From assembly GCA_907165135.1 (NCBI GenBank), contig OU015568.1:5146001-5210000 (forward strand): a stretch of DNA of 64,000 nt, written 5' to 3'. Of the stretch, positions 6,401 to 32,340 are shown piece by piece. The translations under genes and the position numbers were made by a program. The DNA is from Oikopleura dioica. Lineage: Eukaryota > Animalia > Chordata. The notes below the pieces were generated by a model. That model worked only from the letters and a program-made list of their open reading frames with translations, searched no databases and was not told the DNA's origin. Each line of letters begins with the position of its first letter. The stretch's first letter is position 1.

Positions 6401-8371
6401 GCTTCTCCAACATCATCAAGCTCAACAGCAGCAAGTTCTACCACTGCTGCTAGCTCAACTACAACAAAATCAACAACTACCACTTCTTCGACCACCGCAG
6501 CTTCCTCTGCCGCTACTTCTGCCTCCACAACAGCCTCGACCACGGCTTCTACCACTCCCTCTTCTTCAGCTGGCGTCGACAAAACTGCCTGTGTCCAAAA
6601 ACTTACCGAATACGGGCACAAGGACGCAGCCGAAGCTTGCGATGCTATCATCCGTCACAATCAATACCGAGCGAATCATAACTCCCCTGCTCTTGGAATT
6701 CCTTCCAAAGCCCTTTGTGATGGTGCTCAAGAATGGGCGAACATCCAGGCAGAGAGACGAACAGGAAGCATGGAGCACGCGTCAAGGGATCAGCTCGGAA
6801 GTAAGTCAAAAACAGTTTTGAATGCAATCCTATGATAAATCCTCCTTTAGGTCTCGGTGAAAACATGGCCTGGTCAAGCGTGAGCTCTGGCTACTCCATG
6901 TCTGACGGAACCCAAGCATGGCAATCAGAAGATGTCAACTACGACTTCTCTAACCACCAAGAATGTACTGCCGATAGCTGTCCCTCTTGCTCGAAGGGAC
7001 CGAACAATGCATGGTACGATTGTGGCCACTTCACTCAAAACATCTGGAAGAGTACCAAGTTCGTTTGCGTCGCCAAAGCAACAAATGAGGCTGGAACTTT
7101 CATTGTCGCTCGATACGAAAACGGAGGAAACATGCAGGGTGCTTACTTGGCGAATATTGATGGCAACGGGCCCAAGAATGGTCAATTCGTCGGAAAACCA
7201 TCCAGCACTGGAGCTATAACTACGGCTTCTGCTGCCTCCACGACCGCATCTACAGCCGCCTCTACCACCCCTACAACTTCCTCTTCTTCAGGCGGCGTCG
7301 ACAGAGCTGCATGCGTCCAAAAGTTGACCGAATACGGACACAAAGATGCAGCAGAAGCTTGCGATGCCATCATCCGTCACAATCAATACCGTGCAAATCA
7401 CAACTCTCCTGCTCTCGGAATTCCATCAAAAGCCCTCTGTGATGGCGCTCAAGAATGGGCGAACACCCAGGCGGCAAGAAAAACGGGAAGTATGAAGCAC
7501 GCGTCGATAGATCAGCTCGGAAGTAAGTCAAAAATGCACCAGCGGAATTACTCAGAAAATCGAGAAGCCGCTGGCGGCTCCTTTGAGTCTCAAACTCAAA
7601 ATATTGTCAGTCTTATCGGCTGATTCTAGCCATAGGAGCTTTTTCAAATCTTTCTTTAGGTCTCGGTGAAAACATGGCCTGGTCTAGCGTTAGCTCCGGA
7701 TATTCCATGTCCGATGGTACCAAAGCCTGGCAATCGGAAGACGTCTACTACGACTTCTCGAACCATCAAGAATGCACCGCCGGCAGCTGTCCTTCCTGCT
7801 CTAAAGGCCCAAACAAATCGTGGTACGACTGTGGCCACTTCACTCAAAACATCTGGAAGAGTACCAAGTTTGTTTGCGTCGCAAAAGCAGCTAACGAAGC
7901 GGGAACTTTCATCGTCGCTCGATATGAAAACGGTGGAAACATGCAGGGAGCGTACTTGGCTAATGTCGATGGCAACGGGCCCAAGAATGGTCAATTTGTT
8001 GGAAAACAATAATAAATTCTGCGTTTCTCTGTCCCAATTATCTAATAAAAAAGTCCCTTATTTTCAAAAATGTGTTTTTTTTTCTTGTTTCTTGTGGCAA
8101 AAGCCTCACTTTTATTTCGAGCTTTTTAATTCCCTTTCTTTAGCTTCTTACCTTGAAACCCGAAAATCGAATCGACTGCGACACAGCGCTAAATCATGAC
8201 TTCTTCTGGACAGATCCGATGCCAGTTTCTCTCGAAGGCACTTTGAGCAAACTCTCGTCCTCGATGTTCGAGTACCTGACTACCAATCCGCAGCGAAATC
8301 ATCACCAGCCAGCTCAAGCTTCAAGGCAAAATAACGCATCCCATGGCGGCATGATCGACCGTGTTTACTGA
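3435..8371 (+). CDS. CDK9: CDK9 paralogue A (P-TEFb kinase), multi-exon
   Basis: KIGQ|[75 protein letters not shown]; last exon 8144-8371 [41 protein letters not shown] introns include 3699-4546, 5443-5540 and 5677-8143. Confidence 0.95.
3788..4381. mobile_element. Palindromic MITE (family A, copy 1) in a CDK9-A intron
   Basis: About 200 bp near-perfect terminal inverted repeats (gacgcgc..taagg / cctta..gcgcgtc), loosely palindromic core, 3-bp flanks aaa/aaa; second copy at 23977-24566. Confidence 0.9.
5885..8012 (+). CDS. Secreted protein: sushi/CCP-like plus Cys-rich module, Thr/Ser linker, two tandem CAP (SCP/PR-1) domains; nested in a CDK9-A intron
   Basis: Signal peptide [15 protein letters not shown]; [21 protein letters not shown]; [29 protein letters not shown] and [11 protein letters not shown] each occur twice. 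In-frame GT-AG introns 6801-6850 and 7523-7659; stop 8010-8012 overlapping aataaa. Confidence 0.9.
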
Positions 8372-26444: not shown

Positions 26445-29400
26445 ATGAATACAAGCCTCCCTTACGAGCTGGATTTTAGAATGTCAGCCCAACGGGCAGG
26501 CTGGCATCCCGGACTCGCGAAGCTCTCCCAGGAAGAAGTGCTCGACAAGTATCTGACGCTTTATGACAAGCACGAGGAGCTGAAAAAGATTTGCAGGGCG
26601 CAAGAGGAAAAGAACAAGCGCTTCGCCACGAAAATATTGAAATTGGCGGATGATCGGAAACGAAGAAATAGATCCAGATCGGGAACGAGAGATGAAGCCT
26701 TTGATTCTGAGGAAGATATCAGGTTGGAAAGATGATGAACTTTTTAAGAGAGAAATTCGCGAAGCCGATTTTTGTTTTTATAGGCTTTTTAGTTATGAGT
26801 GGCGGCTGAAATGTGAAAAGCTTGAAGACGAAAATCGCAACCTCGCCCGAAAAGTCGAAACGCTCAAGACTCAATACAAAGAGCTTCAGCAATCGAAGAA
26901 GATCCGCTCGTCAAAAGTCGATTCTGGCCTCCCATTTCCCTCAGGTGGCCGACCCATGAGTGGAACATCCCCTGCTCGTCAAGCGAAATCAGCGACTGTA
27001 ACGGCGAATTCGATCAGAACTGGCATGAGGAGAGTCGAGTCAAGCCCGCAGCTGAGGAGTCTTCAGCAGCATTTGGACGTAGCAAACCAGGAAAACGAAA
27101 ATATGCTCGAAGCAATAAGCCATCTTCAGCGACAACTAGCCCAGACAGAAGCGACTAACAAAAGCCTCAACACGCAGCTTTCTCAAAAGAACGAAATGCT
27201 CAACTTCTCTTCCGCAAATCTCAATACCCACCAGAAATCGCTGAAAACCGAGATTTCCAACATGCGACGAAATCTGAACAAAAGCCAAACTGAAATTCAA
27301 ACGCTCCAGTTTGAAATCGACGCCAAAGATTCAAAAGTAACTCTTTTGGAACAGCAGCTCAGCGCGGCGATAGAAGCTCAAAAAGCGACGCTAGAAGAGC
27401 TTGATGCTGTCAGACGAGACTTTTCGAGCGAAATCGAGAGGAATAAAAAGCTTCAAAGTGACAGAAGAGCGCTGGTTCTTCTCAAGGAAGAGCTTCAAAC
27501 TGAAAAAGACACTCGCCAAGATTTGGAAAGCGAGCGCTCTCTTCTGCGAGATCAACTAGCAGCGATTCGAAAAGCAGATTCAGTCGGAAGCAACATCGCC
27601 AAGGAGCGAGAAAATCACTACAAAAGTCAAATCAAATTGCTAGAAGACTCGATCGGCCACGATGCTAAAACTGCTCAAAAATTACGCCTTGAGCTTCATC
27701 AAGAAAAACTCATGACCCAGCGACTTGTGGCGAAACTTGATGAACTCGAAGGAGCGCATAGAAGCATGCAAGAAACCTTGCTCGTTCATGGAAAAGGAAG
27801 CGAGTTGAGAGAAGAGCCGAGGGAATCGACTGAAGAAGCGTTTGAGCGAATGTCAACGCTAAAAATCGCCACGAGCAGTGCTGGAAACACGAATCAAGAG
27901 CTCGAAGTTGCTCTCCGCCAAACTACACGGCGCGTTCGAGAGCTTGAGCAAAAGCTGATCACTTGCCATAGACAGATTCAAGCGAAAGATGAGGAACTTG
28001 TCAAGCTTCAAAAGGAATACGACCAGACCAGACGAGCTCTCGAAGAAATGACGGCGAAGCAGGCCAGAACTATCGATAATCAAAACAGCCAAATAGACCA
28101 ACTTTCTCGAAGCCTAAGGCAAATTGGTCTGGAAGGAACAGCGCCTCCCGTGTCAGGAAACGGTTCAATCAGGCTCAATTCTAGCGCTCTCTAGTAATTA
28201 GCGCCTATTGAACCTTTTGAATTAGGATTGACAAGCTCGAAGCTTATCGACACCGAATTTGGTCAAGCAGTTCCTCTAGGTGAAAATGAAATCTCTCTGA
28301 GATTAGAGGAGTGCGAGTTGTTTACGCAGAATTCTTTCCAAATTTTTGCGTGTGTTAATTTCGGCAGATTCAAGCCTGTGGCGACCAACGTTGTGACTGG
28401 AATCATGCCAAATCTCAAGTTCAGGTACTTCCACTCTTTGTCTTCATAAATAAATGACTACATCTCCTAGACATTGCTATCAAGTCGAAGTTTCCGACGA
28501 TTTCCTCCAATTCCTCCAAGACGGGTGCATCTTCATCGAGCTCCACCGCGTTCTTGGCGGGACACAATACGAACTCATCGGTCGAGGAAAAATCCCCCTT
28601 CGAAAGTTTCTAAGCGCTCAGCACTTTGATGGTTTTGTGGAGATCAAGTCCAACGATCCAGTCGTAGCTGTGAGCGAGATTGCAAGTATTCAGTACGCGG
28701 TGGCGGCGAAAATACCCTTTGAAAATGCGGCTACGCTTCATTTTGAGAAATCAACCGCGAGGGGATTTTTGAATGAGGAGGAAAGTGCAAGTGGAGGATT
28801 CAATTCTTTGACAGGTAACAAATACAAGGATGCGATTCCAACTCGTTCTAGTGAACATCATCGGCGGTCGAAACTTCGACGGAATCTTCGAAAACGAGGA
28901 ACCAAGCTGTTTCTGCATATATAAATTCTTTACGTACGACGAAATGACGACTAACGTAATCGAATCATCTTCAAATCCGCGATTCAACTACACCGCGCGC
29001 CACCCCGTCGAAGAAAACGAAAATCTTCATCGCTACTTATCCACCGGGAGATTGACGATTTTGGTCGTGGATAAAAGCGATGATGGCGAAGATCAAGAAG
29101 AGTACCTTGGCAAGTGCGAGATCGTCCTTACATCTTTGATTCAACAAGACGAGGTTACTGAAATTCTGACGCTCACGGACCCGCATGGTGATGAAAGCGG
29201 ACAGTTGGAGGTCAGACTTGCCTGGGAACACTCATACAGAGGTACTCTTTGATTAGCTCGTGCCTCCAACAATCAAAAATTAAGAACGCCATGGAGCGAT
29301 GAGAGTTCCGGAAATAATTCCAGCAGAAGTTGATTACACCAATCCACTTGTTATTTCCGACAGTCAAAAGTCAAGCCCAAGATCAGCGACTCGATCAAGG

Positions 29401-30371
29401 ACCAAATCATCGGCTAGTCTTCTCAGGTAGATTTTCTCTCTCCAATCTTTTTTCATAGACTTCTAGCGCCTCGATCAAGTCAAAATCCCGCTCGGTCTCT
29501 CGCGAGGTTACTCCCTCCGCAGCAGAAAGTGAAAAGACGCCAACGCCGCCGCCGAGAACGAGTCAATCTTCAGATCCATATCCATTCGACGAGAAGAATA
29601 TCGATGATGACGATGCAGCTTCAGTTGCTCCACCGAGCATTCCAGAAATTGAAAAGATCAAGAGTCCGTCTCCTCCCGTCGAAGAAATCGAGCCAGAGCC
29701 CACTGAACACGAAGCAACTCCTACTCCTGAAGACGGTGAGTTTACAGCGCTAGAAATTGTTTTGACTTAACTTTCAATTGAAGAACGAGAAAATGCGGAG
29801 GAGCAAGAGCCTGAAAAGGTTGAAGACAAAGAGCTGCGAGTTTGTTTGAAAGAGCTTCGTTGCGGAAAAGATGCAGAAGAGACACTTCTCAATTCAAAAG
29901 TCTTCATCGAGTTCAGCCTCTGTGGAAAATTATGCGAAACGAATCCATCAATCGACTATCCCAAAGATCCTGAAACGCCAGTCACGATCAACCATGATGA
30001 AATTATGCCAATAACGGTAAGAAATCTCATAAAAACAATGCTTTTTATCATCGTTTCAAGGAGGGAAGCGAGGAAGAAAACCAACTGAAGTTGATGATGA
30101 ATGGCGAGTTCGATTCTAGAGTTACTTTCACGCTGCTGACGGATCCTGGCGAAGACGATGACGGAAGCGTCGAATGCGAAGATGTTGCCACTGCTGAGAT
30201 CGATCTCCGAACCTGTAAGTCGTTTATTATCCTCCCCAAATGACTGTCTCTTTAGTCAAAGAAAACGAAGATCTGAAAGATCATCTTCTCGAATTCACGA
30301 GCGACGGAAAAGTCCTCGGCGAGCTTCTCCTCGATTTCTCTGCCGCCGGTGTTATTCGTTCTTTATCTTGA
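26445..30371 (+). CDS. RPGRIP1L: RPGRIP1L/RPGRIP1 (ciliary transition-zone protein: coiled coil plus three C2 domains)
   Basis: N-terminal LSQEEVLDKYLTLYDKHEELKK..QEEKNKRFATKILKL; long coiled coil; C2 blocks GENEISL..YQVEVSDDFLQFLQ, CIYKFFTYDEMTT..SSSNPRFN..YLGKCEIVLTSL and FTLLTDPGEDDDGSVECEDVATAEIDL. Confidence 0.88.
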
Positions 30372-30577
30372 TTTTTATATGACTTCAAGCTTTTATTTTT
30401 ATACTGACACACTATTTTGATAAAAATCATTTCTATTTTCTTTCATTTTCATCAACTCAATCTTCAATGCCATCAATCTATTTTTTATATTTCAATGTTC
30501 CAAAAACTTTATTTTTCAAGTTCCAATTTCCTTAAAGATTTCTTTCTTCACCCTTTCGAACTATAAACTGCTTCAGA

Positions 30578-31052
30578 ATGAACCCAAGAGAAACTGAAGC
30601 TATCGGCTATGTCGAGGAGCACAAGCTCCAGCCACTCATGCAGCAGCTGATTGAATTGACGACTTATCATCAGCCTGGAGATCCAAGAGCATTTATGATC
30701 GGTAAAGTCTCTTTTTGCGGTCATTTTGAGTGCCTTTTCTTAATTCTAGAGCAGCTCAAGCACCTGATTTCTGCAAGAGAAAGCGGAACGGAACCTCCAA
30801 CTCTCCTTGAAGCCAACAACTTTGCCGCTATTTTCGGCCTCATCGATATTACTGGTCGTGGAACGTAAGAGCCTCACATTATTCTTCATTGGCTCATCAA
30901 ATTCTAGCGTTTCAAAGGCAGAAGCCCAGTCAGCCCTGCGCAAAGTCGGCATCGAAGCAGACCTTTTCGAATCGGAACTGATCACACGTGACCACTTCGT
31001 CAAAGCAGCAGAAGCCGAATACAAAAAGCTCAATATCACCTTCAAGAACTGA
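30578..31052 (+). CDS. EFCAB10: EF-hand protein with RIIa-like N-terminal docking region, EFCAB10-like
   Basis: EAIGYVEEHKLQPLM..HQPGDPRAFMI|EQL..NFAAIFGLIDITGRGT|..ALRKVGI; two short introns; matches the recalled EFCAB10 pattern (YLEKH..RPEKP.EYLI..MFEMMD..GRGTI). Confidence 0.75.
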
Positions 31053-31207
31053 GAATCTCAAAGTCCGAAAAACTTTTATGTACAAGTGCACCCGTTTTTC
31101 CCTTTCATTTTCTGCGAAACTACTATCGGTATATTTTTATATAATTAATAAAGTTTATTTTGATTAAACCAAAAGTTTTAATACAGAAAGACAAGGAAAC
31201 ATCTGTA

Positions 31208-32340
31208 TTAAAAATAAGGAGTGAGAGTTTTTTGATAGTCGCTAATGAATTTGAGAATGACTTCATTTGCTTTGATCCAATTTTCTCGTGAAGAAAAGCT
31301 GAAGAAAGATACTCAATTCATCATAAGGATTTGGTCTACTTTACCTGTGTTCTTTGCCATTTAGGTGGACTAAATTAATCGGATACAGATTTTTCGTTGT
31401 GCTGGAAAGTGCTACTTCTTCAGCTTCCAGTAGCTCTCCAACTTTTATGTCACGGATTTCCGCCTTGATTCCGGCTGAGTTCAAGGCCTCGATGATTTTA
31501 TCCCGTGTTATTCCTGAGAGGACGTGTTTCGCCGGAGTGGACCAGGTTCCCTTTGAGTAGAGCCAGAAATTAGCCCTAGAATGGACCTTTCAAACTGCCT
31601 CCATCAAGATCCATTTACCTGGAAAGCTCACATAGCAATCCGTCCCGAGACATAAGACACTCGTTGTATCCGTCTTTGTTTGCTTCGTCGAGCGCTAGAA
31701 TGTTGTTCAAATAGTTTCCCGACTTTATGTTCGGATCCATCGAGTCATCTGAGTTCCGTTGAATATCTGTAACTTTGACGGAGACGGTAGAAGTGAGTGG
31801 GTCGGCGTTGACGGGAAATTCTTTCACGATGATGACGAAGTTGTTGGGTTGAGTTTGGTTAGCCAAGGTTAATGGACCAGTTCCTCGGGTGATGATCTTT
31901 TTGGGTTTATTTTAGCTGATAAAAAGTTTGTCCAAATGCAATTGACGAAGATAATTTGCTTTCGATAGTTCTTCCGAATATATTTAGAATATAATTTTGC
32001 AGTCTTTCAGGGTAAGGTTGTAATTTATGGTCCTTTGATTTTTTCAAAATGAACCCGGAACCCATCGGCAATAGATCCTTTGAGGCTTCTCTCCATAAAA
32101 CGCGATCGTTCTATTGATCTCCTCAGTCATTTCTTCATCAGAAATCGTAAGCTTCATTCTCATTTTCTCCGCTGACTTCTTCATTCTTTCCAAATGCTCC
32201 TTGAGAAACATTGGGTATCCATTTTCGATGATGATCACTTCATACAACGAGTCCCCATAAAGAAACCCGCGGTCAGTGATAGGAATTCTAGCGTCTTCAA
32301 GAAGCGATAGAGTTCCATTCACATTGGCAACTTCTCTCAT
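31208..32340 (-). CDS. PLP-dependent class IV aminotransferase (IlvE / D-amino-acid aminotransferase / ADC-lyase type), about 292 aa, 3 introns
   Basis: ITDRGFLYGDSLYEV, FLKEHLERMKKSA, YCRW|IITRGTG, DPNIKSGNYLNNILA (catalytic Lys), CELSR|ANFW, VLSGITR; GT-AG introns 31897-32061, 31576-31618 and 31299-31344 give one open frame. Confidence 0.9.

Follow-up and report, generated by a model that had tools for sequence, protein, structure and literature searches.

A class IV aminotransferase gene of Oikopleura dioica with spliceosomal introns and a well-supported bacterial origin

Introduction

Few transfers of bacterial metabolic genes into chordates are well supported, the tunicate cellulose synthase being the classic case. 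In Ciona, the cellulose synthase gene CesA is an ancient acquisition, and tunicates are the sole animal group that makes cellulose (PMC10334666). Here, we describe a gene from a 64-kb stretch of the genome of the larvacean Oikopleura dioica (GenBank assembly GCA_907165135.1, contig OU015568.1, positions 5,146,001 to 5,210,000), hereafter the window, which corresponds to 5.15-5.21 Mb of contig C1 (G000:C1:5146001-5210000) in a genome of 64.3 Mb assembled in 19 contigs. The gene, at 31208-32340 on the minus strand of the window, has 292 codons in four exons and encodes a class IV (fold type IV) pyridoxal 5'-phosphate (PLP) aminotransferase. Full-text literature searches returned no report of it.

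Fold-type-IV enzymes have published specificity motifs. Branched-chain aminotransferases (BCATs) carry Y-x4-F-[ED]-G-x-[KR] and Y-x-R ... [LMVI]-G-[VL] (PMC8401098, Table 1), canonical D-amino-acid transaminases (DAATs) carry F-x4-Y-x-V-[IVA]-[KR] and the carboxylate trap H-x-Y ... [RK]-x-H, and (R)-amine transaminases carry H-x4-Y-D-[VT]-x-[STAHP] and [FY]-V-[EQAWNS] (PMC8401098). Non-canonical DAATs achieve D-specificity without the Bacillus-type motifs, with arginines at other positions (PMC8401098). We compare the O. dioica gene with these enzymes, with its bacterial and planktonic relatives, and with the genes that surround it.

Results

Phylogenetic placement

A scan of 185,579 species genomes retrieved 575 bacterial relatives, the best of which are 38-45% identical to the plankton protein P0157 and come from marine metagenome-assembled genomes (MAGs) of Lentisphaeria, Arenicellales and other Gammaproteobacteria, Planctomycetota, and Bdellovibrionales/Oligoflexia. 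The closest relatives after the scaffold L007 described below come from marine plankton eukaryotes. Those in Tara Oceans metatranscriptomes are AT-rich contigs of about 1 kb with a polyadenylation signal and one gene apiece (P0157-P0161, together with P0154/P0002 and P0003 of the MERC catalogue), and those on Tara metagenome scaffolds (L012/L013 and L014) are exon fragments of homologues. These plankton relatives are 35-54% identical to the window gene, measured per exon or reading through introns, and have clade-specific features in common with it.

A quick tree of 100 rows and a careful maximum-likelihood (ML) tree of 65 rows (LG+C20+F+G4), the latter rooted on the canonical ilvE_I, ilvE_II and pabC paralogues of the same bacterial genomes, agree with each other. 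In the 65-row tree, the eight eukaryote rows are monophyletic (100/99) and lie inside a 37-row clade (100/100) with marine Gammaproteobacteria/Arenicellales, Planctomycetota, Oligoflexia and Bdellovibrionales, outside which Bacteriovoracia, Myxococcota and other Planctomycetota branch in succession. O. dioica is nested within the eukaryote clade and not basal to it (5-row subclade, 99/91). Placing the eukaryotes outside the 50 rows of the bacterial subfamily was rejected by the approximately unbiased (AU) test (delta lnL 41, p-AU 0.0086). Two indels are common to the eukaryotes and their bacterial neighbours. All 29 sister bacteria carry a 4-residue C-terminal insertion, as do five of the eight eukaryote rows; the remaining three are longer still, and almost all outgroups are shorter at this site (15-17 residues against 21). 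A 2-residue deletion accompanied by a Trp (S-N-x-W-F) marks every one of the eight eukaryote rows and ten of the 29 sister bacteria, which are the Arenicellales, Poriferihabitaceae, L015 and L022 rows. Finally, word searches of 5.8 billion protein clusters with eukaryote-clade profiles returned no named eukaryote among the best 120 matches, all named matches being bacterial; bacteria scored at most 352 bits and the plankton transcripts 471-517 bits, a range that is high by construction since these transcripts are rows of the query profile.

The initial annotation of this DNA had proposed a bacterial origin, with an ML phylogeny as its check, and both the nesting of the gene in a bacterial clade at 100/100 and the AU result, the common indels and the lack of a named eukaryote relative in these searches support the proposal. 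It had also named a eukaryotic clade with orthologues from many animal phyla as the sign of vertical inheritance; a clade of eukaryotic plankton sequences does exist, nested within bacteria. Taken together, these comparisons make horizontal transfer from bacteria well supported. Because the gene is common to a clade of other marine planktonic eukaryotes, the transfer would be old.

On the plankton side, L012 yielded a clean five-exon model, drawn by eye and confirmed by translation, with introns of 86, 97 (GC-AG), 61 and 45 bp. None of these four introns coincides with the three of the window gene, and with no position common to both, intron sharing is unusable for dating the transfer. The GC-AG intron and the 45-97 bp lengths resemble those of appendicularian genes, which is weak evidence for a source of this kind. 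No synteny was detected between L012/L014 and the 64-kb window. The Na/Ca-exchanger exons beside plankton homologues are 44-74% identical to host genes and uninformative on taxon, and three neighbouring open reading frames (ORFs) without a Pfam domain had no useful match in the host genome.

Two placements, 21 nt apart, are possible for the first intron of L012 (L012:7584-7717), one with a GT donor at 7611 and acceptor at 7696, the other with a GC donor at 7632 and acceptor at 7717. Both placements are in frame and give similar 7-residue peptides, and L014 reads through in frame. This may reflect a duplicated mini-segment or alternative splice sites.

Host setting and selection

The coding sequence (CDS) of the aminotransferase has a GC content of 43% and a third-position GC content (GC3) of 49%, close to the GC of 46% and GC3 of 46-54% of its neighbours. 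Its stop codon lies 155 bp from that of a convergent host gene, so that the two 3' ends nearly touch, and CAP-domain genes are located at 5.9-7.6 kb. The host genome holds one copy of the gene.

Database and family searches were run per exon, the joined 292-residue row being used only in alignments, trees and residue tables. With exon 2, a HMMER search of 1.84 billion representatives found one close match, P0001 (87% identical, 97-residue ORF), all other matches being short fragments at most 57% identical. P0001 sits on L007, a 648-bp marine metagenome scaffold that covers exons 2-3 and has the intron 1 acceptor and all of intron 2 in the same places as the window gene, with diverged intron sequence and mostly synonymous exon changes. 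Between L007 and the window gene, amino-acid identity is 82-87%, and over 163 codons the nonsynonymous divergence pN is 0.089, the synonymous divergence pS is 0.82 (saturated) and pN/pS is about 0.1, indicating strong purifying selection on the gene in this sister lineage. The intact ORF, this pN/pS ratio and an AATAAA signal past the stop codon offer indirect support for a transcribed, functional host gene.

The host genome has just one further Aminotran_4 locus, which lies on contig C5 (L002, G000:C5:7783742-7787041) and encodes a metazoan-type BCAT in several exons. Its last exon is preceded by an intron-like gap of about 640 bp (locus positions about 1815-2455), a length unusual in this genome, with repeat-like sequence inside.

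Gene neighbourhoods of the bacterial homologues

Genes of D-alanine and D-glutamate metabolism surround the homologue in the marine bacteria. D-Ala-D-Ala ligase (Ddl) lies downstream of it in 10 loci and alanine racemase (Alr) directly upstream in six; it is divergent from DgcN in 11 loci and from DgcA in nine, with an amidase beyond in five. A D-glutamate-cyclase-like gene follows it in the locus of a Bdellovibrionales MAG (L025), and SpoIID precedes it in one Oligoflexia locus. On NCBIfam models, these neighbours scored 427 bits for DgcA (cut-off 400), 408 for Ddl (262), 245 for Alr (168) and 368 for DgcN, the last from a truncated ORF. Canonical IlvE exceeds its equivalog cut-off in four of the five bacterial genomes examined, and PabC does so in one. 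With D-Ala/D-Glu enzymes as neighbours and a canonical IlvE encoded elsewhere in four of these five genomes, the simplest reading of the bacterial subfamily is that of a putative non-canonical D-amino-acid (D-Ala/D-Glu) transaminase.

The DgcN/DgcA D-glutamate pathway has been described recently. The Arenicellales-type MAGs L016, L017, L024, L028-L033, L035 and L036 have DgcA, DgcN and then the divergent aminotransferase, mostly with Ddl, an arrangement which suggests that a dedicated transaminase supplies the pathway in these bacteria.

In the host genome, outside the window, a D-glutamate-cyclase-like gene (Pfam GLUCM-like_C; G000:C2:5951010-5951789, L114-L116) is represented by three colinear exon matches covering profile positions 1-217, and belongs to the same family as the neighbour in L025. 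The initial annotation had suggested that the enzyme might give the animal D-amino-acid or (R)-amine metabolism. The former gains indirect support from the Alr, Ddl, DgcN/DgcA and D-glutamate-cyclase-like neighbours of the sister clade, and the latter is not supported, its motifs being absent and Y-x-R being kept.

A more distant bacterial homologue, P0012, adjoins an aldehyde dehydrogenase and a branched-chain 2-oxoacid dehydrogenase cluster. The C-terminal halves of this homologue (L005:343-1518) and of another metagenomic one, P0004 (L006:454-1275), are not alignable with the family, probably as a result of assembly frameshifts.

Active site and family tests

The PLP-binding residues Lys151, Glu183, Arg52, Thr209 and Ser/Thr243-246 are kept in all eight eukaryote rows and in the bacteria, and Tyr90-x-Arg92 is invariant in the clade; with these residues, the enzyme should act on alpha-carboxylate substrates. 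By contrast, one active-site arginine differs between bacteria and eukaryotes. Of the 29 sister bacteria, 28 have Arg at the motif-1 site, where all seven eukaryote rows that cover it have Phe, Ile, Leu or Thr; position 186, three residues past Glu183, holds Arg in every eukaryote row (8/8) and Asn in 27/29 bacteria. This putative relocation could either retain or alter substrate binding.

None of the clade members or nearest bacteria reached an NCBIfam equivalog cut-off: they scored 147-208 bits on BCAT models (cut-offs 245-363), 106-145 bits on DAAT (277) and 92-115 bits on PabC (177). On the IlvE models TIGR01122/NF005146 (cut-off 245.55), P0157, P0160 and P0161 scored 147-160 bits and the window exons summed to about 112 bits, against 340-444 bits for the true IlvE of the bacterial genomes. 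Clade members scored 106-128 bits on the DAAT model TIGR01121 (277.45) and 92-101 bits on the PabC models TIGR03461/NF004761 (176.85), on which the true PabC of the same bacterial genome scored 230 bits. Exon by exon, the NCBIfam scores of the window gene give an equally mixed picture. Among solved structures, archaeal BCATs come closest, at about 106 bits.

The motifs are mixed as well. Motif 2 is largely BCAT-like (Y90-C-R92 and L102-T-L104). Motif 1 departs from that of BCATs by Tyr for Phe, Val for Gly and Ile for [KR]; it resembles the DAAT motif in Y-x-V-I but lacks the [KR], and the [RK]-x-H of the DAAT trap is replaced by L-T-L.

Two assignments were considered and rejected. An (R)-amine transaminase is contradicted by Tyr28 in place of His, by Glu in place of Asp, and by the carboxylate-binding Arg92, kept here where (R)-amine transaminases have no Arg. 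A housekeeping BCAT is contradicted by scores far below the cut-offs, by the unmatched motif 1 and by the presence of the host BCAT as a separate gene.

Gene structure

The spliced CDS is 879 nt long and in frame, its sole stop being the terminal TAA (Table 1). The full-length ORF over four exons described by the initial annotation was recovered with both of its motifs, DRGFLYGDSLYE in exon 1 and PNIKSGNYLNNILA in exon 2; the two short introns it listed, of 43 and 46 bp, are also present, and the longer first intron, which it did not mention, is implied by the four exons. All three introns are GT-AG, with a GC content of 31-42%, AT-richer than the exons.

Exons 1-3 each exceed the cut-off of Pfam PF01063 Aminotran_4 (28.5 bits) and are colinear over positions 2-222 of the 223-position profile, a tiling that would not be expected of chance ORFs. 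Exon 1 holds specificity motif 1 (Y28..I37), the phosphate-binding Arg52 and the Y90-C-R92 motif; exon 2 holds the Schiff-base Lys151 (codon 31725-31723) within IKSGNY, together with Glu183; and exon 3 holds the phosphate-binding loops G-I-T-R and S-S-T-T. In exon 4, KFISDY lines up with KIFLDY/RIFAQY at the C-termini of relatives, an alignment made by eye as MAFFT misplaced this short exon. At the other end, the N-terminus is level with those of the bacterial proteins in the alignment, leaving no transit or signal extension, so that the product should be cytosolic.

Table 1. Positions in the window of the aminotransferase gene parts and of the convergent neighbour.
Feature	Position	Strand	Details
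Exon 1	32062..32340	-	93 codons, ATG 32340-32338; ORF translation and Pfam Aminotran_4, 40.5 bits, profile 2-57
Intron 1	31897..32061	-	165 bp, GT..AG, phase 0, GC 31%
Exon 2	31619..31896	-	92 codons + 2 nt; Aminotran_4, 45.0 bits, profile 63-150
Intron 2	31576..31618	-	43 bp, GTAAAT..CTAG, phase 2, inside the Arg186 codon
Exon 3	31345..31575	-	1 nt + 76 codons + 2 nt; Aminotran_4, 55.2 bits, profile 153-222
Intron 3	31299..31344	-	46 bp, GTAAAG..TCAG, phase 2
Exon 4	31208..31298	-	1 nt + 29 codons + TAA 31210-31208; C-terminal helix
AATAAA polyadenylation signal	31154..31159	-	49 nt past the stop; read from the sequence, putative function
Convergent neighbour	26650..31052	+	Long gene encoding coiled coil and two RPGRIP1-type C2 domains, ciliary transition-zone type; stop at 31052

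Discussion

We read this locus as a functional host gene that encodes a cytosolic PLP fold-type-IV aminotransferase and was taken from bacteria by horizontal transfer, a reading to which we give a probability of roughly 0.7. The donor would come from a marine bacterial subfamily distinct from housekeeping IlvE, canonical DAAT and PabC. After the transfer, the gene would have gained spliceosomal introns, a polyadenylation signal and the base composition of its host, with all PLP-binding and catalytic residues retained, and its active-site arginine would have been relocated, the motif-1 Arg giving way to a hydrophobic residue and a new Arg arising three residues past the catalytic Glu.

Competing accounts of the origin differ in how they fare against this evidence. 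That the locus is bacterial contamination, a mis-assembled insert or a decaying pseudogene has next to no probability: the bacterial affinity of the protein, and nothing else, speaks for it, and it is ruled out by three GT-AG introns that break the frame, an intact ORF with all catalytic residues, host-like GC and GC3, a convergent host gene 155 bp away, a single copy in the middle of a chromosome-scale contig, and L007 with the same intron sites and a pN far below pS. This agrees with the initial annotation, which had argued for a host gene from the short introns and the animal neighbours. Under ancient vertical inheritance, larvaceans and a few plankton lineages would have kept a eukaryotic gene that nearly all other animals lost. 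The monophyly of a eukaryote clade with at least eight divergent lineages fits such a history, and intron positions that vary among lineages are compatible with a long eukaryotic past; we nonetheless hold this account very improbable, given that the clade lies three levels deep in bacterial clades of the paralogue-rooted tree, that AU rejects its placement outside the bacterial subfamily (p 0.0086), that derived indels are in common with one bacterial subgroup, and that protein-cluster searches gave no named eukaryote relative. A route in which the larvacean received the gene second-hand, from another planktonic eukaryote (protist or animal) that had itself received it from bacteria, meets no direct counter-evidence and would account for the nested position of O. 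dioica (99/91 for the 5-row subclade) among sequences from Tara metatranscriptomes and metagenomes without a taxon label. We consider it unlikely, and simple descent would explain the same pattern if all members were appendicularian.

Several points nevertheless weigh against direct transfer from bacteria into a functional larvacean gene. The missing taxon labels of the other clade members leave room for a eukaryote-to-eukaryote route or for a much older origin. The groups compared in the AU test were chosen after a first tree had been inspected, and the long O. dioica branch (1.36) is open to long-branch artefact. The absence of named eukaryotes holds for the protein clusters searched, and the support for a functional gene comes from sequence features. 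The exact sister group also differs between lines of evidence: ML favours a Bdellovibrionales MAG (91/75), and the 2-residue deletion favours Arenicellales-like bacteria. This ML sister group is weak, and the AU test does not reject a grouping of the eukaryotes with the ten deletion-bearing bacteria (p 0.32); among the possible donors, the common deletion makes an Arenicellales-like gammaproteobacterium the favoured candidate.

The substrate is a separate matter. We propose, at somewhat less than even odds, that the host enzyme converts D-alanine or another D-amino acid and 2-oxoglutarate into pyruvate and D-glutamate. Such a transaminase would let a bacterivorous filter feeder use D-amino acids derived from peptidoglycan, and the host D-glutamate-cyclase-like gene could take the D-glutamate further. 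It counts against this proposal that D-specificity is assigned by gene association, that the DAAT [RK]xH trap is absent, and that motif 2 is a BCAT-like YxR, making L-activity possible. A transferred gene without any link to D-amino acids, encoding an L-branched-chain or broad L-amino-acid aminotransferase or an aminodeoxychorismate lyase, is a serious minority possibility. The BCAT-like motif 2 (Y-x-R ... L-x-L) with its missing [RK]xH trap would suit an L-aminotransferase, as would the top NCBIfam and PDB matches of the relatives, which are BCAT models and archaeal BCAT structures, and the branched-chain 2-oxoacid dehydrogenase cluster beside the distant P0012. This alternative is opposed by scores far under every BCAT or PabC cut-off, by the DAAT-type Tyr-x-Val of motif 1, by the D-Ala/D-Glu enzymes conserved beside the gene in the sister clade, by the canonical IlvE already present in 4/5 bacterial genomes and PabC in one, and by the host having a BCAT of its own. 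The complete scenario, in which a larvacean ancestor obtained from an Arenicellales-like donor the first animal D-amino-acid transaminase, with a relocated arginine and a D-glutamate-cyclase-like partner in the host, for the assimilation of peptidoglycan D-Ala and D-Glu, is more tentative, and as a whole we regard it as doubtful.

Larvaceans rank among the major grazers on particles of bacterial size and play an important part in ocean carbon flux, and the D-Ala and D-Glu of peptidoglycan make up a large, otherwise refractory pool of ocean nitrogen. Animals, as far as we know, clear D-amino acids by flavin oxidases and not by transaminases; if the O. dioica enzyme is indeed D-selective, larvaceans would have gained a bacterial-style entry to D-Ala/D-Glu metabolism. 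The gene adds a chordate case of transfer that combines rooted phylogeny, common indels, intron gain and purifying selection. It also marks an uncharacterised subfamily of bacterial aminotransferases tied to Alr, Ddl and DgcN/DgcA, and the putative switch from Arg37 to Arg186 offers a natural experiment on substrate recognition in fold type IV.

Among known enzymes, canonical DAAT (Bacillus sp. YM-1; TIGR01121) resembles the window gene product in its fold type, in the motif-1 Tyr-x-Val, in the Lys, Glu and Arg ligands of PLP and in the proposed reaction of D-Ala with 2-oxoglutarate, but it has H-x-Y and [RK]-x-H where the window gene has Y-x-R and L-T-L. The BCATs (IlvE type I, the archaeal 5CM0/5E25/5MQZ and the host BCAT) are also of fold type IV, have Y-x-R and give the best HMM and PDB scores, with IlvE type I alike in length (about 290 residues), whereas Y-x4-F-[ED]-G-x-[KR] is absent from the window gene and the host BCAT, on another contig, is much more distant. 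The non-canonical DAATs from Haliscomenobacter hydrossis (7P7X) and a related structure (7P8O) have the fold type in common with it and differ in scoring about 78 bits to P0157 and in their motifs R-x4-F-D-Y-F-L and G-x-R, which are not seen here. Closest is the marine bacterial subfamily itself (loci L015-L059; Arenicellales, Poriferihabitaceae, Planctomycetota, Oligoflexia/Bdellovibrionales and Lentisphaeria), 38-46% identical to the eukaryote clade, with equal length, an equal C-terminal insertion, the same catalytic residues and the motifs Y-G-D-S-x-Y-E-V and Y-x-R, some of its members having the deletion as well; it differs in that its genes have no introns and stand in operon-like contexts with Alr, Ddl and DgcN/DgcA. 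As an event, the transfer is most like those of the tunicate CesA and GH6-1 (PMC10334666), in which a bacterial enzyme gene was likewise domesticated with introns in a tunicate genome. It differs from them in the class of enzyme and in that the aminotransferase was found only in its host, in one close relative and in plankton eukaryotes.

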